A DNA stretch of 64,000 nucleotides from Octopus bimaculoides. Taxonomy: Eukaryota. Below the pieces are notes generated by a model. That model made no database searches. It had not been told where the DNA came from and saw only the letters and a program-made list of their open reading frames with translations. The position numbers were made by a program, and so were the translations under genes. The DNA lies in NCBI RefSeq assembly GCF_001194135.2, contig NC_068993.1, positions 1,372,814 to 1,436,813 of the forward strand, read 5' to 3'. Shown here piece by piece: positions 29,730 to 64,000 of the stretch. How positions within the stretch are numbered: position 1 is the first letter of the stretch; the number at the start of each line of letters is the position of its first letter.

Positions 29730-30213
29730 GTGAGTTTAAAAATAGATTCATCAGAAATTGTTGAACTTCCTGTGTTTGCAGCTACAGCAATACCATCTCT
29801 AGTAAAGTTCTAAGAAGCCTGGTATATATATATATATACAGTATCTCAGAGAAGTATGTACACCCCTAAAAAATTTCAGTGGCAATTAAAAGCACCCACT
29901 ACACTCTCGGAGTGGTTGGCTTTCGGAAAGGCATCCAGCTGTAGAAACTCTGCCAGATCAGATTGGAGCCTGGTGCAACCATCTGGTTTCACCAGTCCTC
30001 AGTCAAATCGTCCAACCCATGCTAGCATGGAAAGCAGACGTTAAACGATGATGATGATGATAATGGCAATTTTTTTCTGAAATTTTTTAGGGGTGGGCAT
30101 ACTTCTGTAAGATACTCTCTCTCTATATATATATATATTTACACACACACACATACATATGTAAATGTCTGATATTATTTTCATCTTTATATTTCGTTAC
30201 AGTGTTGCTTAAA

Positions 30214-30381
30214 ATGTCTTCCAACATGCCTGAATCAAAGAACTTGACAGAAAGTATTGCTGAGAAAGTCGATGAAGAACTTGATGACTTCCTGAATGAA
30301 ATGATGAAAAAGTCTAAGAAAACTGCTGAAACTGAAGACAAAAGTTTTGAAGAAATTGTTGCTGTGAGTTCAGTTAACTTC

Positions 30382-30414
<33 letters not shown>

Positions 30415-31091
30415 CACACATACACACATGTACTCAATGTATCTGTGAATATGATGCATGTTTACTGTGTTTGTATCAAAATTTTGGGGAAAGATAACCC
30501 ATGTCATCTCCTCGGAGGTATGCACCTTGTCTGTTTAATGACAGCATCACTAATAACTTGTTTTAATTTTCTTGTTTAATGATTTGCTTAGAGAAGGAAG
30601 AGCCAGGTTTGTGACTATTTCTAAGGTCTCAAAGATTGTTGAGAGAAAGGCAGGAAGTTTTCCTCACATTTAGCCCAAATGCTTGCAACAGAGTGGCCTC
30701 TTCTGAGGGCACTCATAGGCCAGGAGAAGGAGGAGGGGAAGGAGGTGGTGGTGGCGAACTGGGTTGTGGATTAAGTCTGCTACTCGTTAAGTGGAATGAT
30801 CTCTCTGAGAAGCTTCAGTACAGTTTCCATCTATAAAATGTCACAACTGTTTGGCTGCTTTGTGGCTGTGGTAGAAGACACTTGTCCAAGGTGTCACTCA
30901 CTGGGACCAAAGAGTTGCAGGTCAAACGTTAACTACTCAGTCACAGCTGGGCTTTGGACATCTTGACCACACAGCAAATGGCTGCCTTCATTAACCAAAG
31001 TAGCAAATAAAGACACAAATGTCAAAGATTTACAAAGATGGATGGAATGAGAAAATGGATGTAAAAGAATATCAACTCTCTCCTCCTCCTC

Positions 31092-31130
<39 letters not shown>

Positions 31131-33841
31131 CTTGTCTTTCATCCAGTTAGTAGAAGAGTTGATAACCATAAAGTTTGTAATTCAGTTTTCAATTATTTTA
31201 TAAAAAGTAATTCAGCATTAATTAATTAATTAATGAAAATTCTTACAGGAATTAGAAACCCATCCGGCTTTTTTGAAAGAAATTGATCCTTCCAAACCCC
31301 TTCATCCAGCTGTTGAAGCTCTGCAGGCCCTGAAGTATGAATGTGAAAACCCTGTCAGTAAGTATAGTCAATCCCTTTTGCATAAGGGTCAGTCCCTTCT
31401 GTGTGTAATCAAAATTTTCTATCTGGGGAAGAGGCCCTTCTGTAAGGGATCAAACCTTTTTAAAATCAATTTTGTTTCACCAGGAAAATGGATTGCTACA
31501 ATTGTTGAGCAAGAAAATCCTGTGCCATATTTGGCCAGAGTCTTTTACATTCTGAGTTTCATTCCTGCCATGGTTGACATTATCTTTCATCATTTCAAGA
31601 TCAATGAAATACTTGGTCAGTGGAACTGCTCACATTTTGGTAGTTGTGAGGAATTTTGTTGCTAGGATCTATTGGCAACAGAAATCTTCTACATGAACAA
31701 GAATTAATCAAGTTATGTGGTTCCAAATTTAAATGCCACCAAAACTTGAAGGAATGTAACCAAATATCTCAAAGTCTTTGTTGAACTCTCTTACAATTCT
31801 GTCATCTGATGCCCGTCCACTTCGCATTTCCACCAGTTGCCATTTTATAGTCATGGTTCTGGAACTTCACTTATGTCTTCTTTTGGGGTAAATTATGAGA
31901 AAAAACGTATACAGAGTTCATTTTATTGATAAGATTTATAAGGTTCCAGTTCTGATGTTGTAACTGTTTCAGGTATGTTTATCTTTTACTTGGTTCAGTC
32001 ATTAGACTGCAGCCATGCTGGAGCACCACCTTAAAGAGTTTTTAGTCAAACAAATCGAACCCTGTACATTTTTTTCAGACACACAGCCATGCCTGCACTC
32101 ATAATAACAATAGTTGCTCATCTCCAAAATTCAAACAAAATCTTTCGCTAATTTTTTTTTTTCCAAATTCGTTTTTGATGAGTTTTTGAGAATTCCATTT
32201 TGTTTTCAATTTACTTACAGTGAAAGCAGACAGTTTTAAGGAAGAAGGAAATTATCTGTTCAAAAAACAAGACTATCGTACAGCTATTGCAAATTACACT
32301 GAAGGAATCAAGGTTCAAGCACCGGACAGGATGTTAAATGCTTCGTTATATTGTAATAGAGCAGCTTCTAATTATCAACTTGGTAAGTAAAGAAAAACTG
32401 ATTGATAAACATTCTCTCATGGAAGACTGGAAACAAGCAACATCGCTCTGTATACATACACATGCACACACACATGCAAGCACACACACACTCACAAGAT
32501 AGGTTTCTTTCAATTTCTGTCTACCAAATCCACTCACAAAGCTTTGGTCAGCCTAGAACACTTGCGCAAGGTGCCATGCCCATTCCTAATATTAAACGGT
32601 ACCTTATCCAAACAACAGACTCTTGTAATCCATTCCATCATGGAAAATAGTTACGAAATGACGATAATCAATATGAATGATGATGATGTTAAATTTCTTC
32701 AGGTATTTAGTTCTGTTCCTTAATGATAAAGAATTGGTAGCAGAGACAGTAGAGTATCAGGTAGAATGCCTTGTGGTATTTGCTCCAGCTCTCTGTGCTC
32801 TGAATTCAAATCCTATCAGGTCAGCTTTGCCTTTGATCCTTTCAGGGTCCAAATGCATAATACCACTCCAGGGTGGTGGTCAGGTGGAACTGTTAGGGTT
32901 TTTGGGTATCAGTTCCTACTCTTCACCTCCTTCCACCAGCCTCTCTCTCCTGACAGAAACAATCTTTTGGGCCCCAGCTTACCGTTTTTAGCCTTCAGTG
33001 AGGCCATCACATGAAGCAACATGTCAACCATACCAATAAAAAAAGCGAGTGGAGCATTGCTCTTTTTTCTCTTTTTTGAAACCTTTAGTTTCTCTGATCT
33101 TCAGATTGTGTCAGCATGTTTTAAAGACCAAAACCATTTCTTGTTTTTGGCATCATTTCTAAATGTATTATGACTGTTGCTATTTCAGGAAACTTTGGTT
33201 ATGCTTTATTTGACTGTGTCATGGCCTGTAAATTCAAGGAACAGTATTTGAAAGCCTTCATCAGAGGTGAGTTCTGTTGTTTAAATTTCTAAACAAATAT
33301 TAAAATGGTAAAATGACAGACATAGGACAGACATGTGCTATTAAATGTCTTGAAGTATATAATTACATCTGCTTCTCTTCTGAGTTCAACTCTTGTCTTA
33401 AGTCAATAAGATAGATACCAGTTCACCAAAATAAAACTATGGTATTGAGTACTCTTTTTTTTTTTTTTGCCAACAGCTAACACTAAATGTGTGTGTGTGT
33501 GTGTGTCTTAGTGGATCTCTTTTGTTCAGTGATGAGGATTTACACTTGTTTGATCGACTGAGTTACCCGCCCCTGAATAAACACGTCCTTGGCTGAGTAT
33601 TTGCACACATGTGTTACCCTTAACACAGTTCTCTAATAGAACCAGTGTAACACAGTGTTTGAAAAGGCTGAACCTTTTTAATTACTGGTACAACCCATTC
33701 AAAGGGCTTCTATACAGTTTCCATTTACCCATTTTTACTCACAAAGTATAGGTTGGTCTGAGGCTCTGAGAAAATGACAATTACCGAAGATGCTACACTG
33801 GAATCGAACCCATGAACCTTTTAACCATTCAACCATCGCCA

Positions 33842-33899
<58 letters not shown>

Positions 33900-36800
33900 T
33901 TACTCGTATCATTTCTTCTATGTTCTCATTATCTGTGTATATCTTCTTGTTTTGACAAGGATCTCAGTGCTGCATTGAACTGAAGAAATTCTCAGACGCT
34001 ATTAAATGGTGTGAAGCTGGTTTGAAAATATCCTTTATCAATTAGTTTAAAGATTTCTCTTTGACTAAACACTTTCAAAGATGTCTTTCAAATGTCTCTA
34101 AAATTACATTCCTTGACTCATAATTTATTTTGAACCTGAAAATGAGAAACTTTCTGCTTTAAAAGAGAAATCACTAAAATTAAAGGTAATTTATTTTCTG
34201 ATATTTTTGGTAATTTTTTACATAATTTCTTCTTCTGTTTTCCCATGCTTAAACCTGGTCTTTTCTTGTCCTTCATCTCACCATTTGTTGCAATCCTTTT
34301 GCCATCATCTTGAAGTTCCACTACTACATCTAATGTCTTTTTTTTTTATCTTCCTCCCCTACAAATTCCTTCCACTTGTGTTAGTCGTCGTGTATTTATC
34401 CTTCATCCTCCCTGGCTTCTCAATCTCTGTACCTGTAACACCAGGTAACACCTTAATGTCTTCCATGATGTATTATGTACACCATTTTAGACATCCTCAT
34501 CTTTCCTCTGTGCATCCATGATAATGCTATCACTTAGGATCGAAGTTACTTACAGAAGGGCCTCATCTGTCAGTCCTTATAAAAGCTGTGAATGTTGGCA
34601 TCACTGTTGCTATTCTGTTGTCTATGACTGATCTAAACTTAATCATCATTTTATCTCATACTCTGACCACCTCTCTTTATCTAACCATTTCTCTGCCAAC
34701 AATATTCCTCTTCTACCCGTTCCTGTATTATGTCCCCACAGGAATTATATATGTGCACCTTACACATGAGGAGTTTTGCTTCATGTTACCTTCTGTACAC
34801 TGCACACATCTACCGTTGTTTTGTGCCCCTGAATTTTTGCTCTTGACAGCAAGAGGAGAGTTTCCAATGGTAGGTGAGGATTGTTTGATGTCTGTATTCT
34901 GTACTTAAGATGAAAGTTGGTGCTGTTGTCTCATGACATTGAAAGTGTTTGTCACACTTGGCCAGATGTTCACACCTAACCACCTCAGTAACAGAGTAGC
35001 AGTCCTTTTATATGCAATTAGTGTTTTATATATGTAATTGTAATGATGTCGACACAGGTTTATTGGTTGAATACCCTTTTTATCACTAACCATTGCAACG
35101 TAGGCTGGCTACATTTTATCGTGCCACCCACATTTGAGGTTTCATGTTTATTAGTGCATTTATTTAACATCCATTTTTCAATGCTAGCGTAACTTGGACA
35201 GTGTTTCATGTCCTCTGTGTCAATTTGGAATTTAGAGTTTCCACCCTCCTGTTTGATTGGCCTTTGTTGTGCAGACGATACCATTTCTACAAAGCATTTC
35301 TTTTGTAGAAAATCCAAGACCGTGATTTACGTAAACAACAATTACAAGAGAGGAAAGCTGATGGTTTAGAATCGAAACTGTTTAAAGAAATTCATGTAAG
35401 TTTTATGTTTTGTTTGATATCATCCGATTGTTGTTGTTGAGCTCCAGGTTAGTCTCATGGTATAAACCGTTCAGCTGTAGCTCAGCCTTGTATGTAATGT
35501 GTAACGTTTGGCTCCAGATCTTCACTGATGACCCAGCTATGTTATGTATTACAAAACAAGCAACTCACATGGCTTTTGAAATTCTGCTTATTCTACGACC
35601 AGTCATGTTTTTTTATTATATTCACATTTCAACACCAAATCATTGGGTTTCCCCAAGTTCTTTTCTCATTCATTGTTCAGATAAAAAGTTTCTCAAAATT
35701 TTATTCCTGCTGTTATTTTCAGAAACGACATATCAAAATGAAGACTGACAAACAGAATGGAAAAACTATTTTAAGTTTATCAGATCTGGAAGGAAGTAAT
35801 CCAGGTGGTGCCAAAGTTTACCTTGATGATGCAGGACTTCTCCATTGGCCAGTTTTGTTTATGTATCCAGAATATAACCAAACTGATTTCATTGAGAGCT
35901 TCAGTGAAAACCATTGGTACATATTTATATTTCTATATGTTTATTTATACATCATTATCATCATCATTTTAATGTCCACTTTTCCATGCTTGCATGGGTC
36001 AGAAGGAACTTGTTGAGGCAGATTTTCTATGGCCAGATGCCCTTTGTCACAAGCCTTTACCTAAAGGTAATATTTCCCCAGAACCCTGTGTTTGAGAATC
36101 AAGCTTCCTAACCACAGAGCCACACCTGCATCTATGACACACCTGTGCCTCTTATAGTTCTGTCTCTTTACACTCAGTAGATTTAGTAAATTTTGAAGAG
36201 TTTTGTACAATATCAATTTATAATGCAGAAGGCACAAGCTGGGCTGTATGGTCAAGGAATTCACTTCTAAGTGTCCATTGCAGTCAGCTGATGATTTTAT
36301 CTTCCTTACTATATTTGGTGTATCAAGAGCTTTGGTTCTGTCAGTCTGATAAATTCCTTATCACACTTCTTTGATGACAATCAGGCAGTAAACCAAAGGG
36401 ACCAAAAATAATAATAAAAAAACAAAAGGTTCTCTCTAGTCTGCCTCAAATACAACTTTATTTCTCTTGTTTCCTAAAACACGATTTGATATTAAGAAAT
36501 ACATCAACAACCATTGTTTCACAAATAAATGTGAATCTCTAGTAATTCTATTCTCCATATTAGATGTGTTTGGAATGGTTCAATAATTTGTATTTTGCAT
36601 ATTAAAATTAATTTAATTACTCTGTTGCTTTTTTTCTAGCTTTTCTGACCATATTTTGGAAATGTTTCAATCTTGTACGGTTCCTTGGGATGAAGAACAC
36701 AAGTATGTTCCTGAAAACATTGAGGTAACAGCAGAATTATTAAATTCTTAAGAATTCTTTAGAAAATCTAATTATATTTAATTTCCTGTTATCATTTAAT

Positions 36801-47885: not shown

Positions 47886-50800
47886 ATGATTAATGAATAT
47901 CTCAGTTTGTTCTTCTTAACGATTTTATTCCATACGTGTGTCCATGGAACGACAATATTTATTGAAGACGAGTGTGTTTGGAGAGAGCAGGCAAAGCTCA
48001 TTGACTGTGATAAGAAATCATTTCAAAGTTTACAGTTTCGTAGGAGCCACCCGGGGTATACAACATTGTCGATAAAAGAAACACCTTTGAAACAATTAGA
48101 CTTTAATATAAGCCATTTACCTGATCTAGAAATCATTGATGCACGAAGAACTAAACTCAACTGTCGAAAAATTAATTTAAGAATTTTGGAGATAGTGGAG
48201 CGCATAATTGTCGACCAACGGACGTGTTTAAACTCAATTTGCTGCCGAAAATTACAAACATTGTCGAACTACGACCGAGATACGAAAGGAAATCACGAAG
48301 AGGCGATGTCTAACCCTGCTGCGTTGATCAGCCTGAACCATTCTGAGCAGTTCCAGTCTGAAGAACCTTTAGATATCGATGTTACATCAGGGATTCAAAG
48401 CAAGAACGACACGAAGTCAGCTTACAACATCATAAGACAGGAAGTACTAGTGAACGGTGCCAAAAGTAAATCAAACAGAAATACCATTAGTATTTCTACG
48501 GAAATAAAAATAAATTATGACCAACCCATCGCTGTTCCTCCTCAACCAGGAACTGGAACCGGTATTCTTATACCTGTAGGTAAGTCAAAGACTTTATTTC
48601 TCATTCACAATAGCTTCCTTTATTTCAATAACCACACTCAGAATTTACATTATCCAACGTGTCGTTGTTTTATTAGAATGGTAANNNNNNNNNNNNNNNN
48701 NNNNNNNNNNNNNNNNNNNNNNNNNNNNNNNNNNNNNNNNNNNNNNNNNNNNNNNNNNNNNNNNNNNNNNNNNNNNNNNNNNNNNNNNNNNNNNNNNNNN
48801 NNNNNNNNNNNNNNNNNNNNNNNNNNNNNNNNNNNNNNNNNNNNNNNNNNNNNNNNNNNNNNNNNNNNNNNNNNNNNNNNNNNNNNNNNNNNNNNNNNNN
48901 NNNNNNNNNNNNNNNNNNNNNNNNNNNNNNNNNNNNNNNNNNNNNNNNNNNNNNNNNNNNNNNNNNNNNNNNNNNNNNNNNNNNNNNNNNNNNNNNNNNN
49001 NNNNNNNNNNNNNNNNNNNNNNNNNNNNNNNNNNNNNNNNNNNNNNNNNNNNNNNNNNNNNNNNNNNNNNNNNNNNNNNNNNNNNNNNNNNNNNNNNNNN
49101 NNNNNNNNNNNNNNNNNNNNNNNNNNNNNNNNNNNNNNNNNNNNNNNNNNNNNNNNNNNNNNNNNNNNNNNNNNNNNNNNNNNNNNNNNNNNNNNNNNNN
49201 NNNNNNNNNNNNNNNNNNNNNNNNNNNNNNNNNNNNNNNNNNNNNNNNNNNNNNNNNNNNNNNNNNNNNNNNNNNNNNNNNNNNNNNNNNNNNNNNNNNN
49301 NNNNNNNNNNNNNNNNNNNNNNNNNNNNNNNNNNNNNNNNNNNNNNNNNNNNNNNNNNNNNNNNNNNNNNNNNNNNNNNNNNNNNNNNNNNNNNNNNNNN
49401 NNNNNNNNNNNNNNNNNNNNNNNNNNNNNNNNNNNNNNNNNNNNNNNNNNNNNNNNNNNNNNNNNNNNNNNNNNNNNNNNNNNNNTGGGAGGGGGTAATT
49501 TTTTTTCTTTTTTGCATATTCGTAATCTCCGACGTCTAAAACGTAGGAATCCGAAAAAAAATATTATATTTACGATTATTTAAGGCAAATACAAGTAAAA
49601 CACACATTCTTTTCACATTAATGTCTTTGCTTGTATTTAATTTCGATTTGTATATGTTCGTCAATTCGCTACGACCTCTTTAAAGTAAACAAAATTCAAA
49701 ATTTTAATTAGTGTGGGTGAAATAATTTTTTTTTTCTTTTTTTGCATATTCGTAATCTCCGACATCTAAAACGTAGGAATCCGAAATTTTTTTTCCAAAA
49801 AATGCGTTTTTCAAGGAGAGGTGCGAAACTTCATTAGCCCCAGATTTGACTATTATCTTTAGCAGGTCAAGCGACCACATTGGATCGTTAGCCTCTTCGT
49901 CAGTTTTGATGTATCAGATAGATATATTGTCAAAGATATTCCAGTCGTGACCATCTTCTATGTTATTATTATTGAGTAGTCTTATTTTTTATCACGTGCT
50001 TTTCACTGCACTACCGAGTACAGCTGTGTGTGCCGTGGGTTTGTTGTGGTGCTCTTATTTTCACTGTATTGAAAGTGTAGGACGTGTGCGGTGCCTAGTG
50101 GTGCTATTTTCTGTATGTTATATATCCTTGTTAGTCCTGCTATTTTTATATTATACCTAATACGCCTACTAGAATAGGAATTGTTTCTGTTTTTAGGGTC
50201 CACATTCAAGTCACCTCTATTTCCAGATATGTGAACCCCCAAGGGTCGTCTGGGCCCCGGTTGAGATAGAGGGCTCTTTGTTTGCTCATCAGTGTTGTTT
50301 ACTGTTTCATGCTCTAACGGCTGTCAGTTCAATCTTCTGTTCTGCCTCAGTGCACCTGGGGCCTAGTGTCCCAGAGTCTCTACACTTCATGCTCCATTGA
50401 TGAAGTGGTGAAAAGGAATCTCCGAATGCTGGACCTCACTGAGGAAACGACAAGGGACCAGGAAATGGGGTGATTTACTGTACCCGTATTATTTCAGTCA
50501 TTTGACTGTGGCCATGCTGGAGCACCAACTTTTGTCGAGGAAATTGACCCCCAGGACTTATTCTTTGTAAGCTTAGTACTTATTCTATTGGTCCCTTTTT
50601 CCAAACCACTAAGTTACGGGGATGTAAGCACATCAGTTGTCAAGTGATGTTGGGGGGGACAAACACAGACACACAAACATATAAATACACATACATATAT
50701 ACGACGGGCTTCTTTCAGTTTCCGTGTACCAAATCCACTTACAAGGCTTTGGTTGGCCCGAGGTGCCACACAGTAGGACTGAACCTGGAACCGTTTACTT

Positions 50801-53800
50801 GATGTGTCGAGCTAAGTAAAATCGCTGTCTTCCACACATACAGGCTTGTTCTTTACAGGTGCCGGTGACACGTAAATGCACCCATGCCAGAGGCACCCAG
50901 CACACTCTGTAAAGTGGTTGGCATTAGGAAGAGCATCCAGTCATAGAAACCATGCCACAACAGACAATTGGAGTGTGGCCAGCTCAAACCGTCCAACCCA
51001 TGCTAGCATAGAAAATGGATGTGAGATGATGAAAATATCTGCTGTTGTTTAGCCTAAGATCAACACTGATTAAGTAGAAGGCCTATGATCCAACCATGAC
51101 CACCTCTTTTTCTTATGAATAGGAAATCTGGGATTACATTAAGATGGTGAGGTCTGAGGGAGAATTGGCTATTTCTAGGAGGATGACTGACTCTGTAGAA
51201 TCTCCCATATTACTCAATAAGTACCAGTCATACACTATGGTCGATATAATCAACTACATATGCTGCCCTTGCAATTAAATGACAGGTATTATAGAAATGC
51301 ATGGGGGTGGATCTTTTTGTTATTATTTTGAAATTTAGTAATTCTATTGAAACAAGGTATGTCGGGAGGAGGAAGAGGAGGTCTTTTTAAAAGCAGACCA
51401 AAAGCAAAGGGTCTGATATTGGTTCCCCAGTGATGCCATATTTTGCTAAATTACCTAAGAACAATAACAATGTCACAACTTCCAGTTCAAAAAGCTCATT
51501 CCAGTCATTGTTTTAATGTAAACTTTTCCATGCTTGCATTGGTCAAACAGAATCCCTTGAGGCTGGTTTCCTACAGACTGGATGCCTCTCCTGTCACTAA
51601 GTAAGCTAATACTTCCCCTTTGGCCAAACAGGTTTTCCATGAAAGGCTGGAAAAGAACCTAATTGCCTGTATGACAGTGACACTTATATCTGACCATCAC
51701 CATTTAATGTTCATCTTCCTGGTTGGATGGTTTGATAGGAGAGCTGCACCATGGAGTAGTAGTGAAGGGGGGTGGCTTTGCACCAGTTGATGAGCGGTTA
51801 GAGGTTACCTATATAATATGGCCTTCTTTCAGTTTTCATCTATTGAATTGAAGTAAAAGACATTTGTCCAAGGTGCCAAGCAACAGGATTGAACTTAAAA
51901 TTACATTTAGGAAGTAAGCTTCTCAATTACAAGGCTGCACCTGCCTGTGTCAAATATTGATCCTTAGAAATAATCAATCAGATATTTCAGACATTTAATG
52001 TTTCACAGCTGTTTATAAATTTTAAATCATAAAAACAGCAGGTTTTCTCTAAAAACTTTTACTGCTAATCCACCTGGCACAGACCATGATTCCATGACTA
52101 TAAAACCTGTCATTAATGGAAAAGTTTATATCTAAATCGTTACCCCATAATTTCAGAGAATATTTAAATATTCTAAGCTTCATTTTAATAATGAAGTAGC
52201 TAATTACTGTTGCTAAATCCTTCCAAATTCTTGCTCGTTTTAAGAGTTAATTGAAAGAAAGCATTTTATTCCCAAAAACAAAATATCCTCATGGTTATAG
52301 GCACAGATTTGGCTATGTGGTAAGAAGCTTGCCTTCCAAACACAAGGTACCACTGCATAGTACCTTGAGCAAGTGATTTCGTGAACGGAAATTGTGTGGG
52401 GGGGGTCTCTGTTCCCCACCACTCCAGTGTTGGTTAATTTATGTCCCCATAACTTAGTGGTTTGGCAAAAGAAACTGATAGAATAAGTATCGGGCTTAAA
52501 AAGAAAGTCCTGATGTCAATTCATTTAACTAAAAATTCTTCAAAGCCCCAGTCTTAATGACTGAAACAAGTAAAAGATAATATAGTTTAGCTTTAATTAG
52601 CAGAGATATTTAGTCATGATTATCTCTCTAATACTGATTATATAAAACTGGAATTATATGTTTAGTGTGTTGGCTAACGGTCCAAGGCTGAGATAACATC
52701 TGCTAACTCATTGACCCAGCAACCATGAAGAGGCACAGGTCACTGTTCTCTGAATTCATAGGGTTTGATGTCATAACTCTTCTAAAAGTGGGAGAGAGGA
52801 ACAGGAAACTGTTTGTGAGAATTCTTCTCAAAGAATACAGCTTGTGTAAGTCACCAAGAATTGTCTTTAGGCTTTAGTCTCTCAAGCAAAAGCTTTAGTT
52901 TCAATAGTAAAAACAAAATATAATTAAAAAATTAAAACAAAACTGGTAAAAATGTAACAATTTTTTTTTTTTTAATTAAAAAATAAAAATCAGGTAATAT
53001 TTGTGTAAAACTATATTTTAATTACAAAGAATTCATGTCAATCTCCATAGGAGCTTTTCTGCAAAGAATCTTCTTGATAGACTTATTAAATCTGTTAAAT
53101 TACCTAAGAATATAAAATAAATGAGGATTAAAAACAAGAAAAAGAGACTTTCTATGTAAAAAAATTAGAAAGGTGGTGAAATGTCAAAATTCTAAAATAC
53201 CATTCTAGATATCTCTTACAATATTTTATTTCTATTAGGTTCTTGGTGGAGGTAAAGACAATTTAAGAGATGAGGAATTATGTACATTATTTACAATTGA
53301 TGGATATTTGTCCTCATCTTGTTAACACAACGTTTCGGCTGATATATCCTCCAGCCTTCATTGGGGGTTCGAAATTTCCCCAATGAAGGCTGGAGGATAT
53401 ATCAGCCGAAACGTTGTGTTAACAAGATGAGAACAAATATCCATCAATTGTAAATGTTACTGGTATCAAAGGCAACCACAGCAGGAACCTAAAGAATTGG
53501 TCTGTGAAAGTTAATTCATAAAAATTCTACAGAGTAGATTTGTTGTGAGGAGTGAATTATTCCACATTTAATATTGACAACTCCAGCAGGATTTGAACTC
53601 AAAACCTGGAGAGACAAAACTTATTTAACCAAGTATCATATCATTCCTGGCATCACATTTCCATCTCCTAAAAATGGTTTCAAATTTTGGCACAAGGCCA
53701 GCATTTTCAGGGGTAAAGGGAAGTCAATTATGTTGACCCCCCCAGTGCTCAACTGGCTCCTATTTTATGCCCCAGGAGGATGAAAGGTAAAGTTGACCGC

Positions 53801-55073
53801 GGTGGAATTTGAACTCAAAATGTAAAGACAGGTGAAATGCTGGGAAGCATTTTGGCCGGCATGCTACCAATTCCACCAGCAATGGTAACAACAACAACAA
53901 GGTATAGTCATGAGTCAGAAGTTGATACCACTTAACAGTTTCACAAGAACTTCAATGTTTCTAGTGTTTCATTGTTTTTTTTACTAAATTTAGTCTCCAT
54001 TAAACCCACTTAACCTTTCCTGACTCACTGCAGACAGTTTCTCAGCCAAACCCACTCCCCACCCACCTCCTCATAAACAATACTATTGCTGGCCCTCTTC
54101 CTCTCTAGCCCTTAGTTACAGTTTAATATATTATTCACCTTCCCCTCACAAATGAAAGTCATTTGGATATACGATGGGAATCTAAGAAAGATTTGAAATA
54201 TTAACAAAGGATGACACACACACACACGTCATTTGTGACGAGAGATGTCAAGTAAACTGAGCAATTGAAAGAGATGAGGTAAGTACTGGAGGTAAAAATA
54301 AACTCATTCCACTGACTAAAAGAATGGTTTGTCCCAAAAGACTGAGCACCACCTTGCCTGCTGAGGGTTGGACACAAGCCTTCTTTGGAGGTGGTGAGCT
54401 ATCATGCTTCCATTGCTTCAACTGGACTTTAGTCTCAGAATCAAAGTGATGGACTCGGGTTTCATCCTGTGAATTTGGCACTTCTTCACACAGCTGTCCT
54501 CGTCCATACACATCACATGATCCTACCAGTGCAGTCGTCTCTCTTGCACACCACATCTGATTCCTCTTGTGCCCAACTTTTCTCTCAAGATGCTTACACT
54601 CTGACAAACATACACACTGGCATCATTTCTTTCAAGCTTATGCATGTCCTCAGCTATCATAGCCCATGTTTCACTGCTATGTAGCATGGCTGTTCGCACA
54701 CAGGCATCCAATAATTTGTCTTCCACTCTGAGAGAGAGGCCCTTTGTTGCCAGCAGGGGTCTGAGCTCTCTGAACTTTGCATTTGTTAGAACTGTCTTCA
54801 TTTACCAAACCCGATTCTAGTCTGTGATAATCCAAACATACCATTTAATCTCTTCAGATGAAATCTCAATTTTTGTGTCTCATTTCAGAGATGGACCTGA
54901 CAATTGTCTACTCAATTCTAGGATTATTGGTGCTAATGACTCTGGTTTCAGTCAGCTTCAGCCTCTATGTTCTGTGTAGTCGGAAGAAGCAAAGAAATTG
55001 CAGTATCCGAGACTTCATGCCAACCAGTAGTTTGGCTTCGAGATCAAGATCACAAGGAACTGTGATATTATGA
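47886..55073 (+). CDS. Uncharacterised type-I single-pass membrane protein with signal peptide and miniature LRR-like, Cys-flanked ectodomain, 292 aa
   Basis: Exon 1 47886-48579 (G|GTAAGT donor) joins exon 2 54889-55073 (TTTCAG| acceptor) in phase 1. The product has a signal peptide MINEYLSLFFLTILFHTCVHG, LRR-like segments TTLSIKETPLKQL and LPDLEIIDARRTKLNC, and a TM segment IVYSILGLLVLMTLVSVSFSLYVLC followed by RKKQR. AATAAA occurs at 55119 and 55128. Extra exons could be hidden in the 48685-49485 gap. Confidence 0.75.
49486..49860. mobile_element. Dispersed repeat (possibly Helitron-derived) with an internal duplication; an opposite-orientation copy is at 63760-64000
   Basis: GCATATTCGTAATCTCCGAC(G/A)TCTAAAACGTAGGAATCCGAA occurs twice (about 49514 and 49743), and its reverse complement ends the window. 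AGGAGAGGTGCGAAACT is also shared. Confidence 0.5.
53289..53455. repeat. Near-perfect fold-back: 78-bp arms, 11-nt loop, one mismatch; derived from the hammerhead-like SINE/PLE tail
   Basis: Arm 53289-53366 is the reverse complement of 53378-53455 except for one C:A pair (A53432). The loop is GTTCGAAATTT. Confidence 0.95.
54300..54800 (-). mobile_element. Adjacent RTE LINE fragment (about 54480-54800) and mariner transposase fragment (about 54300-54480)
   Basis: RTE peptide AKFRELRPLLATKGLSLRV..LLDACVRTAMLHSSETW...GIRCGVQERRLHW abuts the mariner peptide QDETRVHHFDSETKVQLKQWKH..SPPPKKA.VQPSAGKV. Confidence 0.85.
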
Positions 55074-55115
55074 CCAATTTGTAAATTTCCTAAAGATTCC
55101 ATAGCTTGTTTCAAT

Positions 55116-55133
55116 TTTAATAAAAATAATAAA
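55116..55133. terminator. Overlapping bidirectional poly(A) signals between the membrane-protein gene (+) and MOCS1 (-)
   Basis: TTTAATAAA reads AATAAA on + (55119-55124) and ATTAAA on - (55121-55116). A second + AATAAA lies at 55128-55133. Confidence 0.45.
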
Positions 55134-55275
55134 CTGTTTTACAAAAAAAATGATTTTAGAACTATTCTTAAATTGGTATCTGCAAGTATATAAAGGGCAG
55201 TGTGAGTGTGTCTGTGTGCATGTAAACAAATATAAAACAAAAAAAAATTTACCTTTAATATAAATTGAGTATCAC

Positions 55276-58200
55276 TCAACCACCAATTAGAACCATAGGG
55301 CGGTTTTTCATGTTCTTTATACTATGAACACCTGTTGAGAGAAAACAGTTTGATGTATCCTTCCTGAACATAATCAGAACTTATTTAAAGTGGAATACAG
55401 ACCCAGCGCGTCAAATAACCGCCTAATAATTCAAAGCAACAGTTCAGTCTTAGGATAAATGTGAGAGAAGTCTTAACCAATCTGAGCAAACGGAGCTAAA
55501 ATACTCACCAGCATGTTGTTTATGCTTCCGTTTCACAGCAAATTCTATATGCTTCAGGATTTCTTGCCCAGAAGCATTTTCTCGAATCATATCTTTCAAA
55601 GATATTTCTTCATTTCCAAAAAGACAAACCTGAATGTTAGAAATAGATTAACAACAATTTTTATTTTAAGATATTTTGTGGCCGTTGCTAGTAGCGCCCG
55701 ACTGGCCTTCGTGCGGGTGACACGTAAAAGCACCCACTACACTCTCTAAGTGGTTGGCGTTAGGAAGGGGAGTCTGGTGTTGCCATCCGGTTTCACCAGT
55801 CCTCAGTCAAATCGTCCAACCCATGCTAGCATGGAAAGCAAACGTTAAACGATGATTTCATGCAAAAACATCACCCAATTAACTCAGAGAGATTCAGATG
55901 TCACTTTTACAATCCTCTTCATACCATCCAGACCTCATTTGCATCTTGTGCAGACATCTGTTTATTTTTCGGTCAAATTACCATCTGTGGCATTCCCTCT
56001 TATCTTTGGTTTCCCAGCAATCTAGAAAGTGGTTCTATAGCAGCCCTTCATGCAACAGGTGACATTTTAGTTATTCACAGTTTCTCACTGGTTTTATTAG
56101 CCATCAGAGACCATTCCTTGCTTCCAAGCAAAGTAACATTTCCTCATGGCCAGACGTTCTCGCATAATATTGCTAGGATGGCAAGTGACAGTCATTTTAT
56201 ATTCCTCAAAGTCCCTAAATATAGAAAAGAACGTTTTGTTGCGAGATTTACTTTTTCAGGGGAGGTAACTCTTAGGCGACGTAATTCAATAGACAAACTA
56301 GCCATTCGACAAATAGGAATGCAGGACTAAAACCCTTCAAAATGATGCCCCAGCATGGCCGACGACAGAAAGTAGCAAAAGGAATAAAAGAAATAAAGTT
56401 GATACCTTGAGGTTTCCATTGGCCGTAAGTCTTAAACGATTACAGGAACCACAGAAATGGTTTGACATGGAAGTAATAAAACCTATTTGACCTTCAAATC
56501 CAGGAACTTTGAATGCCTTTAAAAAAACAGAAAACAATAGTCTCAATATTTTACTAGTTTTTTTTTTTTAAATAATAGAATAAATTTAAAAGTTCAATAA
56601 GTTGTGAACATACTACAACTACTTACAATAAAGTATATAAGCAGGCAATAAAAAGTGAACTAATTTTTAATGTAAAACCAGTAAAATTATCTCTAAAAAT
56701 TTTAAATAAAATAAACAATAAAGACATGGATGCCAACATGACTATGTGGTTACAAAGGGGGTCTAGTGGAGGGAAACTATGTGGAAGCCCATTGTGTATG
56801 TGTGTATAATCCATGTGTGTCTCTCCCAAGTATGGTTCCATGCTTTTGCTAATTGTTTTAGGTGCCTGTGGAGTCAAGAGAAGACATCTTTTTGGCTGTT
56901 CTTTGAGCCAGCAGAAAATCCAAAATTTTGCAGGAGGAACAGAGCTGTACCAGCAACTTGGTTGGTACCCATTGTTAGTTGAGTAGACTGGAGTAATAAG
57001 AAATGAATTACCATGCTCAAGGATAAAATGCACCATCAAGTCCAGGTATCAAACCTGGCCTAGTTATTAGGGTCGCATGTGTGCACAGGTGTGTGTGCGT
57101 GCGTACATGTATTTCAAGGATCTATATTGATGGAACATCAATGAGAAACTGAAAAACTGTTGCTTTTTAAGTAAGTTCCTGGAAATGTTTGGTCTGCACT
57201 GAGTTACAGAAATTCCCCAATCACACCATCATAAATAGTGAACCAATGATCAGTCTATTGAAAACCTGGAACCATTGTTCACCAATTCTAATATAAAATA
57301 TGGTAAACTTTTACAAAAATACCAACATCAACTCAGAACCAAATTCTCCAGATAGTAAAAGACATCAAAATCCAGGAATATGTTTTCTACATACCTTTGA
57401 TGTATCATTAGGTTTATCTTTAAGTTTTGATATGTTTGGCCATTTTCTTTTAATAATTTCCAACATGTCTTTGTAAGGAACCATTTTCTTCAAATTCCAT
57501 TTGTTGTCTTGAAAAGGCATGTATTCTATAAATCGTACATCTATATTCTGAAAGGATAAACAATGATTTTTCGATAATAATTCAAGGCTTAAAAGTTGGA
57601 GGGGAGGGGGCAAGACACAATGCCGCTAAGTATTTCGTCCATCATGCCAGAAGAATTGCTGCCAGCATGACATCCTAATAATGGTTTCAAGTTTTGGCAC
57701 AAGGCCAGCAATTTGGGTGGAGTGGGTGGGTGGGTTAAGTTGATTACATTGGCCACAATGTTCAATTGATGTTTATTTTATCAACCCCGAAAGGATGAAA
57801 GGCAAAGAGGACCTTGACAGAATTTGAACTCAGAACGTAAAGACGGATAAAATGCTGCCAGGTGTGTTAATGATTCTGCCAGCTCGCTGCCTTCATGACA
57901 CCTTAATAATAATAATTCTTGATAATTTTTGACACAGAACCAGCAACTTTTAGGGGAGGAAGAAATAGATTATATTGACCCCAGAGCTCAACTGGTCCTT
58001 ATTTTATTGACCTCAGAAGGATGAAAGACAAAGTCTACCTCAGTGGAATTTGAACTAGGAACATAAAGCTAGAAGAAATGCCTTTGTCCAGTGTGCTAAC
58101 GACTCTGCCAGCTAATTGCAATAATAATCCTTTCTACTATAGGCACAAGGCCTGAAATTTTGTAGGAGGGGGCCAGTCTCAACCCTGAAAGGGATAAAAG

Positions 58201-61200
58201 GCAAAGTTGACCTTGGTGGAATTTGAACTCAGAACAGTGACGGGTGAAATACCGCTAAGCACTCCATCCAGCGTGCTAACGAGTCTGCCAGCTCACTGCC
58301 TTAATGATAATAATCGTTTCTACTGGAAGCACAAGGCCTCAAATTTGGCGGAAGGATTAAGTCGATTACATTGACCCCAGTGCGTAACTGGTACTTATTC
58401 TAAAGTGATTTAAATTAAACTACATTAAAATTTCATGTTAATGACAGTTAATTTGGCAAGCTATCCATTATTTTCAAAAGTAATTGAAAGAACAGCAGAT
58501 TTCAACAGAGGCATCGTAACAAGAGTGAATGTAGATAGAATTCTGAGAAAATATCATCATCAGCACCACTGTTATAACATTCATTATCATTACTGCCATC
58601 ATCATCATTATAAACACAAATGAAAATAAACTCACCATTTTCTCTGTTAACTGCACAAAATCACAGATTTCATCATCATTGAGGTTCTTCATAACAACAC
58701 AATTGATCTACAAAGATTCAGAACAGAAAATCAAATCGGGTACAGCCAATAACATGGTTCTTGGTTCAATCCCACTATGCGTCTTCTATTGTGGCCTAGG
58801 GTTGACCATCGCCTTGTCAGTGCCATTTGGCAGATGGAAACTGTGCAGAAGCTCAGTGTATGAATGTGTGTCTTGATGATGACAAATATCCGTCAAATGT
58901 AAATAAGGTAACTAACAACTCTATGAATTTCACCGATTCCATGTTTGCTAGCACTGTGTCTACAGAACCTTCCCTCTGAACTATTTTAATAAATTAACAG
59001 TTTGTAGAGGAATCAAAGTGATAATGAATTTAAGCATGGCTACGTGAGTTCTTTTGCAATCATATGGCACCAGGTTCAATTCTAGTGTGTGAAACAGTTT
59101 GACTATGTGCATGTTATCATAAGCTCATGGTGAGATAAGCCTTGCAAGTGAACTATAATAGGAGGAAACTATGCTGAAGCTTATCACATGGCTTGTACCT
59201 ATTCTTTGGTGGCAAACCAAATCTTTGGCCCAGTTTAATGCCACTATCTGTCTAACAGAATCTACTCTGTCACAAATACTGGAATTAAATTGCTCTGCCA
59301 GCCTAGGAGCCCCCATCACTAAAATGGTCATTCCTTCTATTACTAAGCCATAAACGTTTTTTAAATTTGCAAGAAAAAATTTCAAATATTCTGCATTGAC
59401 ATTTTCCTTACCTTTAATGGAGAAAATCCTGCTGCCAAAGCACCCTTTATATTCTCTAAGACTCTATCTAAACAATTCCTTCTGGTAATGAAAGCAAACT
59501 TGTGTGGCATTAAACTATCAAGACTGACATTCAGGGAATCTAAGCCAGCTTCTTTTAACTTCTCCACAACTCGATGAAGAATCACACCATTGGTTGTCAT
59601 AGTAATAAATTCCAAACCATATTGTTTCAGGAGATGAAGTTCTTCTGAAATATTTAAGAATTACAAAAAAAAAAAAAAAAAGAACATCAAATTCCTGAGG
59701 AATTAAGAACTCTTTCAAAATTATTTCTTTATTCCAATAAAACATAGAATATAGCAATAAACACAATTTCCAAACTATTTTTGGTAAATAAATTCACACC
59801 AATATGGTCATAGTTTTATTTGTCATATTTGTTGTCGCCTTACATTATTCGTGTTGCCATATTTGTGGAACAACAGAATTGTGTTCAGAAATCCAAGATT
59901 CAGATAAAGATTTTAATAACAATCTTAGGTAAAAAAAAGAAAGAAAAAAACCCTGTTCCTTAAACTAACAAAGAAACCTCTACTTGGTTTCTCAACTTGC
60001 TAGAAATAGCAACCAAATNNNNNNNNNNNNNNNNNNNNNNNNNNNNNNNNNNNNNNNNNNNNNNNNNNNNNNNNNNNNNNNNNNNNNNNNNNNNNNNNNN
60101 NNNNNNNNNNNNNNNNNNNNNNNNNNNNNNNNNNNNNNNNNNNNNNNNNNNNNNNNNNNNNNNNNNNNNNNNNNNNNNNNNNNNNNNNNNNNNNNNNNNN
60201 NNNNNNNNNNNNNNNNNNNNNNNNNNNNNNNNNNNNNNNNNNNNNNNNNNNNNNNNNNNNNNNNNNNNNNNNNNNNNNNNNNNNNNNNNNNNNNNNNNNN
60301 NNNNNNNNNNNNNNNNNNNNNNNNNNNNNNNNNNNNNNNNNNNNNNNNNNNNNNNNNNNNNNNNNNNNNNNNNNNNNNNNNNNNNNNNNNNNNNNNNNNN
60401 NNNNNNNNNNNNNNNNNNNNNNNNNNNTGTGTGTGTGTGTGTGTGTGTATAGCTATGTGTGCACCACAATCATCATCATTTAACATCTGTTTTCCATGCT
60501 GACATGGGCTGGATGGTTTGACAGGAGCTGCACCTGGTCCCATTGTCTGTTTTGGATTGGTTTCTACAGTTGGATGCCCTTCCTAATGCCAACCACTTTA
60601 CAGAGTGTGCCAAGTGCTTTTTATATGGCACCACACATTTTATACGGCACCACACATTTTATGTGGCCCCAACACATGCACGCGCGTGCGTGCTTGCGCG
60701 CGCGTGTGGTCCAGTGATTAGGATGTTCACCTCATGATCATAAAGTCCTTGAAGATCAAGTAGTGTACACTGTGTGTTTGAGTGATGCACTTCGTTTCAC
60801 ATGGCTCCAGTCTACTCAGCCATAATGAGCCTGAGTGACAGTGCAGCCCTCCTTCCCTCCCTGTTACATCATTCCTACAAAACACATGTAGGCCTGACAA
60901 ACAGAGGAGAGTTTCAGCTTAGACATATCCACAACTTTACATGTTATTTCTCTCAATAAATATCCAGAATAAATTATATAAAGGTGCTACGTTGACAATT
61001 ACTGAGCAAAGATTATCAAAGAAAATACCACAAAACATACAAACTAATCAACTTTACATCGGAATATTTCTAGCTTTACTCATCATCATCGTTTAATGTC
61101 CGCTTTCCATGGTGCCAACTGAAAACTGGTTACCTGCACCAGGTTCCAGTCTGATATGGAAAGGTGTCTAAAGCTGGATACCCTTCCTAATGCCAACCAC

Positions 61201-61581
61201 TCCAAGAGAGTAGTGGGTGCTTTTTATGAGCCACCGGCATCAGTCCCATTACACATTGGTGAGATGATATAATTCTAAGATATTACTCTGAAGTACATTT
61301 AAGTTCAGAAGAGAAGAGCTGACAGCAGTTGTCTCTAAGGTGATGATCTATTAGTTATGACCCTAACGAATAAATGAAACATAAAAAAAAACTGTTTAAT
61401 TACACATTTTAATCACAAAACAATGTGGAATATTTCAAAGTGTGAACTTACATCGAAAATTACATCTTTCCGTTAAAGATATCCGTAGATACGTATGTTG
61501 TCTGCCATAGTTATCAGTGAGAAAAGCAGAGAAAGGCAGAACATTGTTATCAAAATAATTCCCTGTTTTTAATGGAACTGT
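55276..61581 (-). CDS. MOCS1: MOCS1A (MoaA-like radical SAM GTP 3',8-cyclase), partial model
   Basis: Visible exons are 61581-61452, 59644-59412, 58707-58636, 57547-57395, 56516-56406, 55629-55509 and 55331-55276. Peptides are [59 protein letters not shown] (CX2CX13C) and the C-terminal NRPMVLIGG*. The exon carrying QYC-to-GGEP is missing, probably in gap 60019-60427. The first exon is unresolved (weak candidate 61899-61864). Confidence 0.92.
57670..58400 (-). mobile_element. Head-to-tail array of about four tRNA-derived SINE copies in a MOCS1 intron
   Basis: Repeated GGCACAAGGCC...GAAAGGATGAAAGGCAAAG...GAATTTGAACT...GCCAGCT units of about 200-250 bp, all in the same orientation. Confidence 0.8.
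60019..60427. other. Assembly gap (409 N) expected to contain a MOCS1A exon; other gaps at 10839-11051, 21771-21780, about 26350-26393, about 45902-46007 and 48685-49485
   Basis: Runs of N. Splicing the flanking MOCS1A exons directly gives CGA T|AA, an in-frame stop. Confidence 0.85.
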
Positions 61582-64000
61582 CTGCAAGAAAATTCAACTA
61601 AATTAATAAAATTAAATTCAAACATACTGAAAAAAAAAAAAGTTTTTAGAGAAACCTTATCGAAATTCAAAGAAATAAACTCTTCTGTCAGGGTGAGGGT
61701 TAACAGGTTCATTTTGATATTAAACGAGCTCCAAAGTAAACCTCATTTAAATATTGGTAGAATGGAAAAAAGGAGACAAATTAAAGCAAGTGCCCATTAT
61801 ATTTCCTTTTTTCTTTTCTTTATGTTTAAACACACAAATTCTTATTTCATAAACATGTTTTACCATTCTCTGACAGAAACTGAATGGGTCATTGGTCATA
61901 TATTGCCCCTTTCAGGATCAGGAAATACTTCAGCCCTGATCGGTTGTTAACCACGTCAAGGCATAAGTGTAACACTAATTAGAGTGGCTGTGTGGCAAGT
62001 AGTTTGCTTACCAACCACATGGTTCTGGGTTCAGTCCCACTGCGTGGCACCTTGGGCACGTTTTTTTTTTTTTTCTGCAAGAGAATATTTGTCATCTGAT
62101 CAGTCGTATGCCTTATAGGATCCTTGCATTGAAAATTACAGACCTTTACAAGTTAGAATAAACATAAAACGATGTTTTATGAGGTGTCTATTTACTTCTG
62201 CCATGTCTATGTACACACAGGTGCAGTTTCCAGACGAGATTGATTTAAATATTTGAATAGGGTTGACTAAATGAGCCAGAGAAGAGGAGATGGGAAATGG
62301 ATGAAATAAATGTTAAGAGAAAGGCCATTGTGGTGATCGACAAAATAATAAAGATACCTAGATATGATGTGACTAATGTTCATTGGTAGCATAACAGGCT
62401 GTTATACACACTAACCAACTCGAAATATAATTACTAAAATAGCAAAATTAAGACTACGTAGTTCAACGTAGTTCAGGGCGTGATCTAAGGTGAGATTCGG
62501 CTGCTATCTTTGGCAGGTCGAGCGACCACGTAGAGGTTTCGTCGTTTATTCAAAAAGCGAGTCGTTGCCTCACTCGTTCACCGTTTTCCCTTTAATTATT
62601 TTTCTAGTTTCCTCGGCCCTTCTCTAAGGTTTTCATCCAGCAGATCCCACCCGGCACCCAGTTTTATACACCACTAGTCCTTTAGATGTGTTAAGCGAAC
62701 TCTACCCTGTTGCAAGCATTTCGACTGGTCTCTTAATATTCTTATAAAAGCAGGGCCGTCGCTTGACTTTTAGAGGATCCCATCTCTTCAATTAAAATTC
62801 ATAATCTACGCACCTTTTATTCATAGCTATATTTTACTTTATTCGAACTGAAGTTCAACACTTCACGTTATCCTAAAGAACATCTTTACAAGTTAAATTT
62901 ATTTAGGACTGGAACTATCGTATTATTTCATGTTTAGGAAGGCCAACATTTAATAGGGTTGAATATTTATTCGATAGACTCACAAATATCAGAAGACAAG
63001 CATTTCAAAATAACTGTGAAGTATAGTTGTCTCGGCTTTTGTATGCGAAGTTTATTTTAGAACATTAAAATACAAAAAAATTTCAGACCAAAACGAAAGC
63101 AAACTATTTCAAATAATATATTTTTGTAAATTAGACGTGAATGTTCTCAAAGACTTGATAACAGTCGAAAAAATAAAACTTTGCCAAATAAAATACGTCG
63201 ATCACAAACTAGTTACAACTGAAGAATTGAGATGCTTGGTGACAATGAGAAAACAATATCTATATCCCTATAAAGCGGCGGCCTGGTAGGAACGTTAGCA
63301 TGCTTAGCGATATTTCGTCTGTTTTTACGTTCTGAGTTCAAATTCCGCCGAGGTCGACTTTGCCTTTCATCCTTTCGGATAGAGAGTGAGAGAGCGAGAG
63401 AGCGAGAGACGAAGAGAAAAAGAGGGAGGGACACAAAGACTAAGAGATGTGTGTGTGTGTGTGTGTTTGGTACACGTCTATCTATCTATCTATCTACCCG
63501 AGCTAGCCAAAGTCTTGTGAATAGATTTGGTAGACGGAAACAGAAAAAAGACAGTCGTGTGTGTATATGTGTGTACCTATGCCTGTGTGTGTATGCTTGT
63601 ATGTATGTATACATCCCCACTACTTTTTTTTTGTCTTTTCTGTTTAAGTTGTTCTTATTTTCATTATTTTGGGTTTCTTTCGTTTTTCTTTTATTACCAC
63701 GGTTTTTTTTTTTTTTTTTTTTTTTTTACTCGTCTGGCTTGAAATTTCCAGTTAATGTCTTAACCAAAGTACAACCGCGGAGGCCCCATGCGACCGCAGG
63801 GGTTGCACGGGCTTAGCGACGGTCTCTATAAAAGTACCCTAGACGTGAATAAGATAATAAAAGACGAATGAAAAAAAAACAAATTGTTTCTAGAATCTTT
63901 TCAGTATAAAGAGTCAAGGGGTTAATGTAGTTTCGCACCTCTCCTTCAAAAAATTTTCTGAACTCCTTCGTTTTAGGTGTCGAAGATTACGAATATATAA

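Follow-up and report, generated by a model that had tools for sequence, protein, structure and literature searches.

Does the MOCS1 gene of octopuses still supply both halves of cyclic pyranopterin monophosphate (cPMP) synthesis, or has its MoaC part been separated from MOCS1A? The question is raised by a 64,000-nt stretch of the Octopus bimaculoides genome (RefSeq assembly GCF_001194135.2, contig NC_068993.1, positions 1,372,814 to 1,436,813; the whole stretch is referred to below as the window), whose minus strand carries MOCS1A at 55.2-61.6 kb, encoding GTP 3',8-cyclase. A preliminary description had proposed that MOCS1A is uncoupled from MOCS1B at this locus, the stop-codon exon and its donor remaining with no MoaC visible downstream. 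The analysis presented here makes it likely that octopus MOCS1 keeps MOCS1A only, the stop exon and donor surviving but being spliced to a short non-coding tail, with MoaC encoded elsewhere.

In humans and other vertebrates MOCS1 is reportedly bicistronic, with the type I, II and III patterns of exon-9 splicing that Gray and Nicholls are said to have described in 2000. In the human gene, the GG motif and the stop codon lie in exon 9, whose donor leads to exon 10, the exon for MOCS1B/MoaC; in 55-60% of the transcripts exon 9 is wholly or partly skipped, which gives MOCS1AB fusions (10.1101/429183). Human MOCS1B is reportedly not expressed alone, its mitochondrial import and maturation depending on the fusion protein, and Mayr et al. 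date the MOCS1A-MOCS1B fusion to the unikont ancestor (10.1101/429183).

Assembled from the exons, the 247 C-terminal residues of MOCS1A are 100% identical to O. bimaculoides XP_052828523.1 and XP_014768676.1, and show 96% identity with O. vulgaris and 83% with Argonauta hians. E. coli MoaA matches three of the exons as a tblastn query, and the cluster containing proteins identical to the window MOCS1A carries PF04055, PF13353 and PF06463, so that both the radical-SAM and Mob_synth_C domains are present. The double-glycine C-terminus required for activity is also found (...NRPMVLIGG, followed by the stop).

The stop-codon exon is spliced to a non-coding terminal exon

The stop-codon exon, equivalent to human exon 9, occupies 55253-55331 on the minus strand. 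It opens behind the acceptor ...ctcaacag/GTGTTC (slashes mark splice boundaries), ends its reading frame with ...LIGG and a TGA stop at 55278-55276, and closes with 23 nt of 3' untranslated region (3' UTR). The donor, AAAG/GTAAAT at 55253/55252, lies exactly 23 nt past the MOCS1A stop. In RNA contigs of nine public O. bimaculoides runs, exon 55629-55509 is spliced to 55331; both the sequence and these runs thus bear out the exon and donor as first described, and the exon is kept in O. sinensis and Argonauta.

The donor is not merely preserved but used. Five of the runs, coming from four studies with contig depths of 6-91 (X25, X28, X29, X33 and X35), have as their sole assembled form over the region the chain 55629-55509 to 55331-55253 to 53103. 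The acceptor of this intron reads ttcttag/GTAATTTAACAG at 53104/53103, and the two acceptors suggested initially, at 55181-55180 and 55135-55134, occur in no RNA contig. In place of the short intron to ~55181/55135 that they implied, the 3'-UTR intron measures 2,149 nt (53104-55252, minus strand, GTAAAT...TTCTTAG), extends to 53104 and encloses the last exon of a plus-strand gene for a membrane protein that converges on MOCS1A.

The terminal exon of the spliced mRNA (52965-53103, minus strand) is 105-139 nt long. Its contigs are collinear with the genome and end at 53059, 53037, 53000 and 52965; ATTAAA occurs at 53022-53017 and again at 52976-52971, ahead of an A run in the genomic sequence. 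Stop codons occur in all of its frames, and a join from 55509 that skips the stop exon would append just 23 residues (GNLTDLISLSRRFFAEKLLWRLT, then a stop); we therefore regard the exon as non-coding. Both the exon and its acceptor are kept in O. sinensis. Because the exon junction falls 23 nt past the stop, the spliced mRNA should evade nonsense-mediated decay under the 50-55-nt rule. The proposal that a 3'-UTR intron lies close enough to the stop for such an escape holds as to distance, being within the limit of ~50 nt, with the escape itself a prediction from that distance.

In the four other runs (X14, X17, X18 and X20) the intron is retained, the contigs running uninterrupted past 55253 and fusing with the mRNA of the convergent gene. 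This form has an alternative 3' UTR (55095-55252, minus strand), the end of which, at ~55095, is presumably set by ATTAAA at 55121-55116. A short 3' UTR beside the convergent gene had been put forward; it occurs solely as this intron-retaining alternative, and the signal, which does exist, plausibly serves this form only. When the intron is retained, the MOCS1A and neighbouring mRNAs would overlap tail to tail, as their 3'-end signals coincide (55119-55133 versus 55121-55116). Raw read depth is 3-6 before 55253 and 0-2 after it, in samples of 7-9 reads, which fits molecules that are mostly spliced or ended at this point.

No counterpart of the human type II and III splice forms, in which the stop is removed, was detected: each of the nine runs gives one unbranched contig through 55509 to 55331. 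A major stop-skipping isoform would have branched or broken the contigs at 55509 and is therefore not expected, while rare forms would be missed by Logan contigs, which drop rare variants.

The intron also holds repetitive sequence. An inverted repeat at 53289-53455, with 78-nt arms that are 99% complementary and an 11-nt loop, lies where the 3'-UTR intron of MOCS1A and the neighbour's last intron overlap; its RNA contig depth of 6,000-28,000 marks it as a member of an abundant transcribed repeat family, and one run shows T>C at 53438. A transposon-like stretch at 54392-54759 on the minus strand (translating as ..LHSSETWAMIAEDMHKLERND..) has an RNA depth of 1,000-28,000, and an open reading frame (ORF) that partly overlaps it, at 54251-54622, has no Pfam match. 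A search of 52500-56500 against Rfam likewise gave no match.

MoaC is absent from the locus

The locus was searched by tblastn with 20 MoaC queries, namely E. coli MoaC, the MOCS1B domain of the human protein and a set of 18 MoaC proteins from eukaryotes. On both strands of the window outside its N gaps, nothing better than E ~1 was obtained. The same queries match the MOCS1 locus of the clam Mactra antiquata at E 1e-44 to 1e-51, so the search was sensitive enough to recognise a molluscan MoaC. The lack of MoaC motifs noted earlier on the downstream minus strand is thereby confirmed and extended to the opposite strand. No MoaC was found with the 20 queries in the gap-free loci of O. sinensis (L002) or Argonauta (L001) either; the comparison with other cephalopods and molluscs that had been proposed thus agrees, with MoaC missing from both octopod loci and present in that of the clam.

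Public gene models are in line with this result. The 90% cluster of Octopus MOCS1 contains O. sinensis isoforms X1 (380 residues) and X2 (300 residues), O. vulgaris products of 380 and 325 residues, and the entries of O. bimaculoides. A MoaC domain is missing from every one of them, and no A-B fusion is annotated; all end in ...LIGG except the 325-residue O. vulgaris variant, which ends in ...NLKKYL. The exon that follows the stop exon (53103-52965) is non-coding, in place of the MoaC exon (PF01967) of a bicistronic gene. By tblastn, by the terminal exon and by annotation, the locus yields MOCS1A only, as had been suspected.

One place in which a MoaC exon had been thought able to hide is the 801-N assembly gap at 48685-49485, which has high-copy repeats on its flanks and falls within the convergent gene's last intron. 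DNA contigs from four runs end in repeats at its edge, and the O. sinensis locus ends at about window position 49680, just short of it. The orthologous Argonauta intron is complete, lying between membrane-protein exons at 19617-18901 and 16110-15928 of its locus, and contains no MoaC, nor do the 5.8 kb beyond. Given this gap-free intron and the repeats at the gap edges, a MoaC exon in the gap is very unlikely.

Origin of the 3'-UTR intron

The neighbourhood is shared among octopods. The gap-free O. sinensis locus is collinear with the window from 61985 to ~49680, and its donor reads TATTAAAG/GTAA. In the gap-free Argonauta locus a dual-specificity phosphatase gene lies upstream of MOCS1A and the membrane-protein gene tail to tail downstream, as in the window, and the donor is CTTACAG/GTAAAT, 16 nt past the stop. 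In Mactra (L004) the stop exon (MLNLSKMKNRPMILIGG, then the stop) is followed 20 nt later by a GTATGT donor and then by the MoaC exon; a 292-residue MoaC product (PF01967) is annotated on the same strand from 13 nt past the MOCS1A stop, the MoaC domain lying on one exon ~2.2 kb downstream. The clam and the octopus thus have the same kind of stop exon and donor, but only in the clam does the donor lead to MoaC.

The comparison with the human gene runs in parallel. Octopus MOCS1A has its stop and GG motif in a small exon with a donor soon after, and the stop falls in the penultimate exon of the mature mRNA. In contrast to the human gene, a non-coding exon of 105-139 nt comes next, stop-skipping forms are not seen and the locus is devoid of MoaC. 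Of the features of bicistronic animal MOCS1, the octopus therefore retains the small GG-stop exon and a donor in use, and lacks the MoaC exon and the stop-removing splicing.

These comparisons suggest a route by which the arrangement could have arisen. The ancestral animal layout would have been a small GG-stop exon, a donor ~20 nt later and a large MoaC exon, of which octopods would have preserved half. The octopod donor would now be spliced to the 105-139-nt non-coding terminal exon 2.15 kb downstream, with polyadenylation of the mRNA there; alternatively the intron would be kept and the mRNA would end ~160 nt past the donor, its tail overlapping that of the convergent gene. Judged from position rather than from homology of the intron sequence, the octopod stop exon and donor would correspond to the canonical exon 9, and the 3'-UTR intron to what remains of intron 9.

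Could the 3'-UTR intron instead be a new one, its donor lying near the stop by chance? The terminal exon does not resemble MoaC exons, and neither it nor its acceptor was found by blastn in the Argonauta locus, as might be expected of a recent intron. However, the exon bounds agree with the canonical plan: the distance from stop to donor is 16-23 nt in the two octopod genera and 20 nt in Mactra, where the donor leads to MoaC, and the human gene shows a similar order, with the GG motif and stop in exon 9 and a junction from there to exon 10 (10.1101/429183). We consider a new intron improbable, and favour a relic of intron 9.

Where is octopus MoaC?

If MOCS1 were still a two-part gene in octopuses, its MoaC exon would have to lie more than 55 kb downstream, with the three opposite-strand genes nested in a giant intron, or in an assembly gap, and a minor splice form would have to join it to 55509 or 55253. 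Very long introns do occur in cephalopods, the window has N gaps, and a minor form could escape contigs that drop rare variants and a raw coverage of 7-9 reads. Against this, the nine runs pass unbranched through 55509 to 55331 and on through 55253 to 53103 or into read-through, ending in sequence with poly(A) signals; the O. sinensis RefSeq models, although built from RNA-seq, list no fusion; and the 801-N gap sits in an intron of the convergent gene whose Argonauta orthologue is free of both gaps and MoaC, with high-copy repeats at the edges. A gene that is still two-part is thus very improbable. We rate as more remote still the loss of MoaC from octopods, with MOCS1A in another role, the second step taken over by an unrelated protein, or the cofactor supplied by diet or a symbiont: a protein search with the Mactra MoaC domain recognised no named cephalopod in the best 120 of 7,519 matches, a weak indication as most of these are nameless, yet MOCS1A is 83-96% identical across Octopus and Argonauta and retains both its C-terminal Fe-S motif and the GG end that catalysis requires, a conservation that makes sense only if its product goes to MoaC, and molybdenum cofactor enzymes are essential in animals (10.1101/429183).

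Given the good conservation of MOCS1A among octopods, with its cluster motif and GG end intact, it is likely that MoaC exists elsewhere in the octopus genome rather than having been lost. It would then be a separate gene with its own promoter and mitochondrial signal. Plants provide a precedent for the split, as their two cPMP-synthesis halves are encoded by separate genes, Cnx2 and Cnx3, each with its own mitochondrial presequence (10.1101/429183). The octopus resembles them in that its MoaA-type gene has no MoaC part attached, the split being presumed for octopods; it differs in that plants are taken as primarily unfused, whereas octopods would represent a secondary break, and the second gene was not located in Octopus.

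Several points weigh against the uncoupling and relocation of MoaC. The window contains six N gaps, and the 801-N gap is still open. Since Logan contigs drop rare variants and the raw reads number only 7-9, a rare long-range MOCS1A-MoaC isoform may be missed. The O. sinensis and Argonauta loci cover only 10 kb downstream. The Octopus MoaC gene was not found, which leaves relocation a hypothesis, and to call the intron vestigial is to rely on the position of its donor, not on homology of the intron or of the terminal exon.

On a further, speculative reading, the relic intron would be kept as a switch: splicing would take the MOCS1A tail out of the stretch antisense to the 3' end of the neighbour, against a background of heavy ADAR editing of double-stranded RNA. 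The octopus arrangement is a lineage-specific variant of a known gene arrangement. Both the uncoupling and the relic intron appear undescribed; a full-text search for MOCS1 and octopus retrieved only a food-safety review, while the gene models are public. If the uncoupling is true, a lineage with a broken MOCS1 unit must express and target MoaC on its own, and offers a natural test of the need for the fusion. The kept stop exon, donor and 3'-UTR intron would illustrate clearly how a splice site can persist after its exon has gone, and annotators would have no A-B fusion to expect in octopods.

MOCS1 in other molluscs

In the oyster Saccostrea cucullata (L003, 10001-11173) MOCS1A is a single-exon gene of 390 residues with no MoaC within 10 kb on either side. 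As in the octopus, no MoaC is nearby; unlike the octopus, the oyster gene has one exon and neither a stop exon, a donor nor a relic intron. Stand-alone MoaC ORFs of 199-200 residues with a presequence-like N-terminus were found among the protein matches (P0135, P0141, P0142 and P0151). The ORF of P0135 (199 residues, 180 cluster members) lies on a 2.5-kb Logan contig (L006), 0.9 kb past the end of an EF-Ts ORF, and from the member counts and the MOCS1A tree its family would belong to oysters. This suggests that MOCS1 breaks also occurred elsewhere in molluscs, possibly including a second, independent one in oysters. In the land snail Candidula unifasciata (L005) the MOCS1A gene spans 21.7 kb and no MoaC lies in the 10 kb downstream, reflecting either a long intron or another uncoupling.

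A number of candidates were considered as octopus sequences and rejected. P0135 itself, on its contig after the EF-Ts ORF, has no repeats in common with Octopus DNA. P0243/P0229 come from a Tara metagenome scaffold and are presumably coral, judging from the sample and the 156 members, and P0132 belongs to a locus of canonical layout, in which a Mob_synth_C exon lies 7.5 kb upstream. P0004 and P0005, the top unnamed MOCS1A matches, group with bivalves in the MOCS1A tree. Caenorhabditis elegans, at first taken to have separate A and B genes, was dropped as a comparison, MOC-4 being a subunit of molybdopterin synthase (PMC13653925).

Exon structure of MOCS1A

The exon chain was derived from the RNA contigs. 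All exons lie on the minus strand. The most upstream coding exon placed in the window is 61452-61581, located from pieces of an RNA contig, splice contexts and translation; ~197 nt of further 5' transcript found no placement on 57300-63000. It closes with ...ERCNFR, the beginning of the radical-SAM CxxxCxxC motif, the remainder of which (C-QYC) falls in an exon under the N gap at 60019-60427. This hidden exon is 168 nt long, as 165 nt plus 3 boundary nt of contig X14 remain unplaced between 61450 and 59645. By length, the remaining Cys part is in the RNA contig, and O. sinensis and O. vulgaris read CNFRCQYC. The O. sinensis counterpart of the hidden exon (L002, 14109-14303) encodes QYCMPESG...IKIVE, including the third Cys of the motif. 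The gap explains the partial or mis-joined public O. bimaculoides protein models (for example ..RCNFRSKELH..), which are partial only because one exon sits in it.

Downstream of the gap follow coding exons at 59412-59644, 58636-58707 and 57395-57547, then 56406-56516, which carries the C-terminal Fe-S cluster motif, and 55509-55629, the equivalent of human exon 8, which ends ...KRKHKQHAG in phase 1 ahead of the stop exon. The 325-residue O. vulgaris 'isoform X2', ending in ...NLKKYL and a stop, fits a frame-shifting alternative acceptor 22 nt into exon 55629-55509, gaaatgaag/AAATATCTTTGA (window 55607-55629). Contigs from several RNA runs break 26-30 nt upstream of this junction, as a branch would give. 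In the intron between exons 56406 and 55629, a repeat at 55680-55863 reaches an RNA contig depth of 370,000-560,000; it is probably a very abundant element resembling short interspersed nuclear elements, without an Rfam match.

The convergent gene and its neighbours

The convergent plus-strand gene encodes a protein of 292 residues (47886-48579 + 54889-55073) that starts like a signal peptide and has a single transmembrane helix; a Pfam search returned no family for it. Coding exon 1 (47886-48579) holds the signal-peptide-like N-terminus, ends in the donor CTGTAG/GTAAGT and is seen in RNA contigs; the Argonauta orthologue shows 61% identity. The last exon (54889-55150) supplies the transmembrane helix and the tail; its stop codon lies at 55071-55073, and its end near 55150 presumably follows the AATAAA signals at 55119-55124 and 55128-55133. 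The two exons are joined in RNA contigs (48579 to 54889), a loose contig end at 54887 matching 48548-48577 exactly, and the joint is a clean GT..AG intron (GTAAGT at 48579/48580, TTTCAG ending at 54888). Opposite read orientation in run X40 supports the plus-strand assignment.

When MOCS1A is spliced, the two genes interlock: the MOCS1A intron contains the neighbour's entire last exon, and the neighbour's last intron in turn contains the terminal exon of MOCS1A. In O. sinensis, ~1.6 kb of extra sequence (L002, 25143-26767) is placed exactly between the 3' ends of the two genes (window 55147/55148), so that there the tails may not overlap.

The membrane-protein gene, at 47.9-55.1 kb, is the nearest of three plus-strand genes downstream of MOCS1A, the others being a TTC4 Wheel-domain gene at ~35.8 kb and a PAP2 gene at ~20.9 kb. 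Both lie opposite the MOCS1A strand: exons of the TTC4/Cns1-like gene (Wheel domain PF18972) are spread over 30091-36013, and those of the PAP2-type lipid phosphatase gene (PF01569) over 17468-21252.

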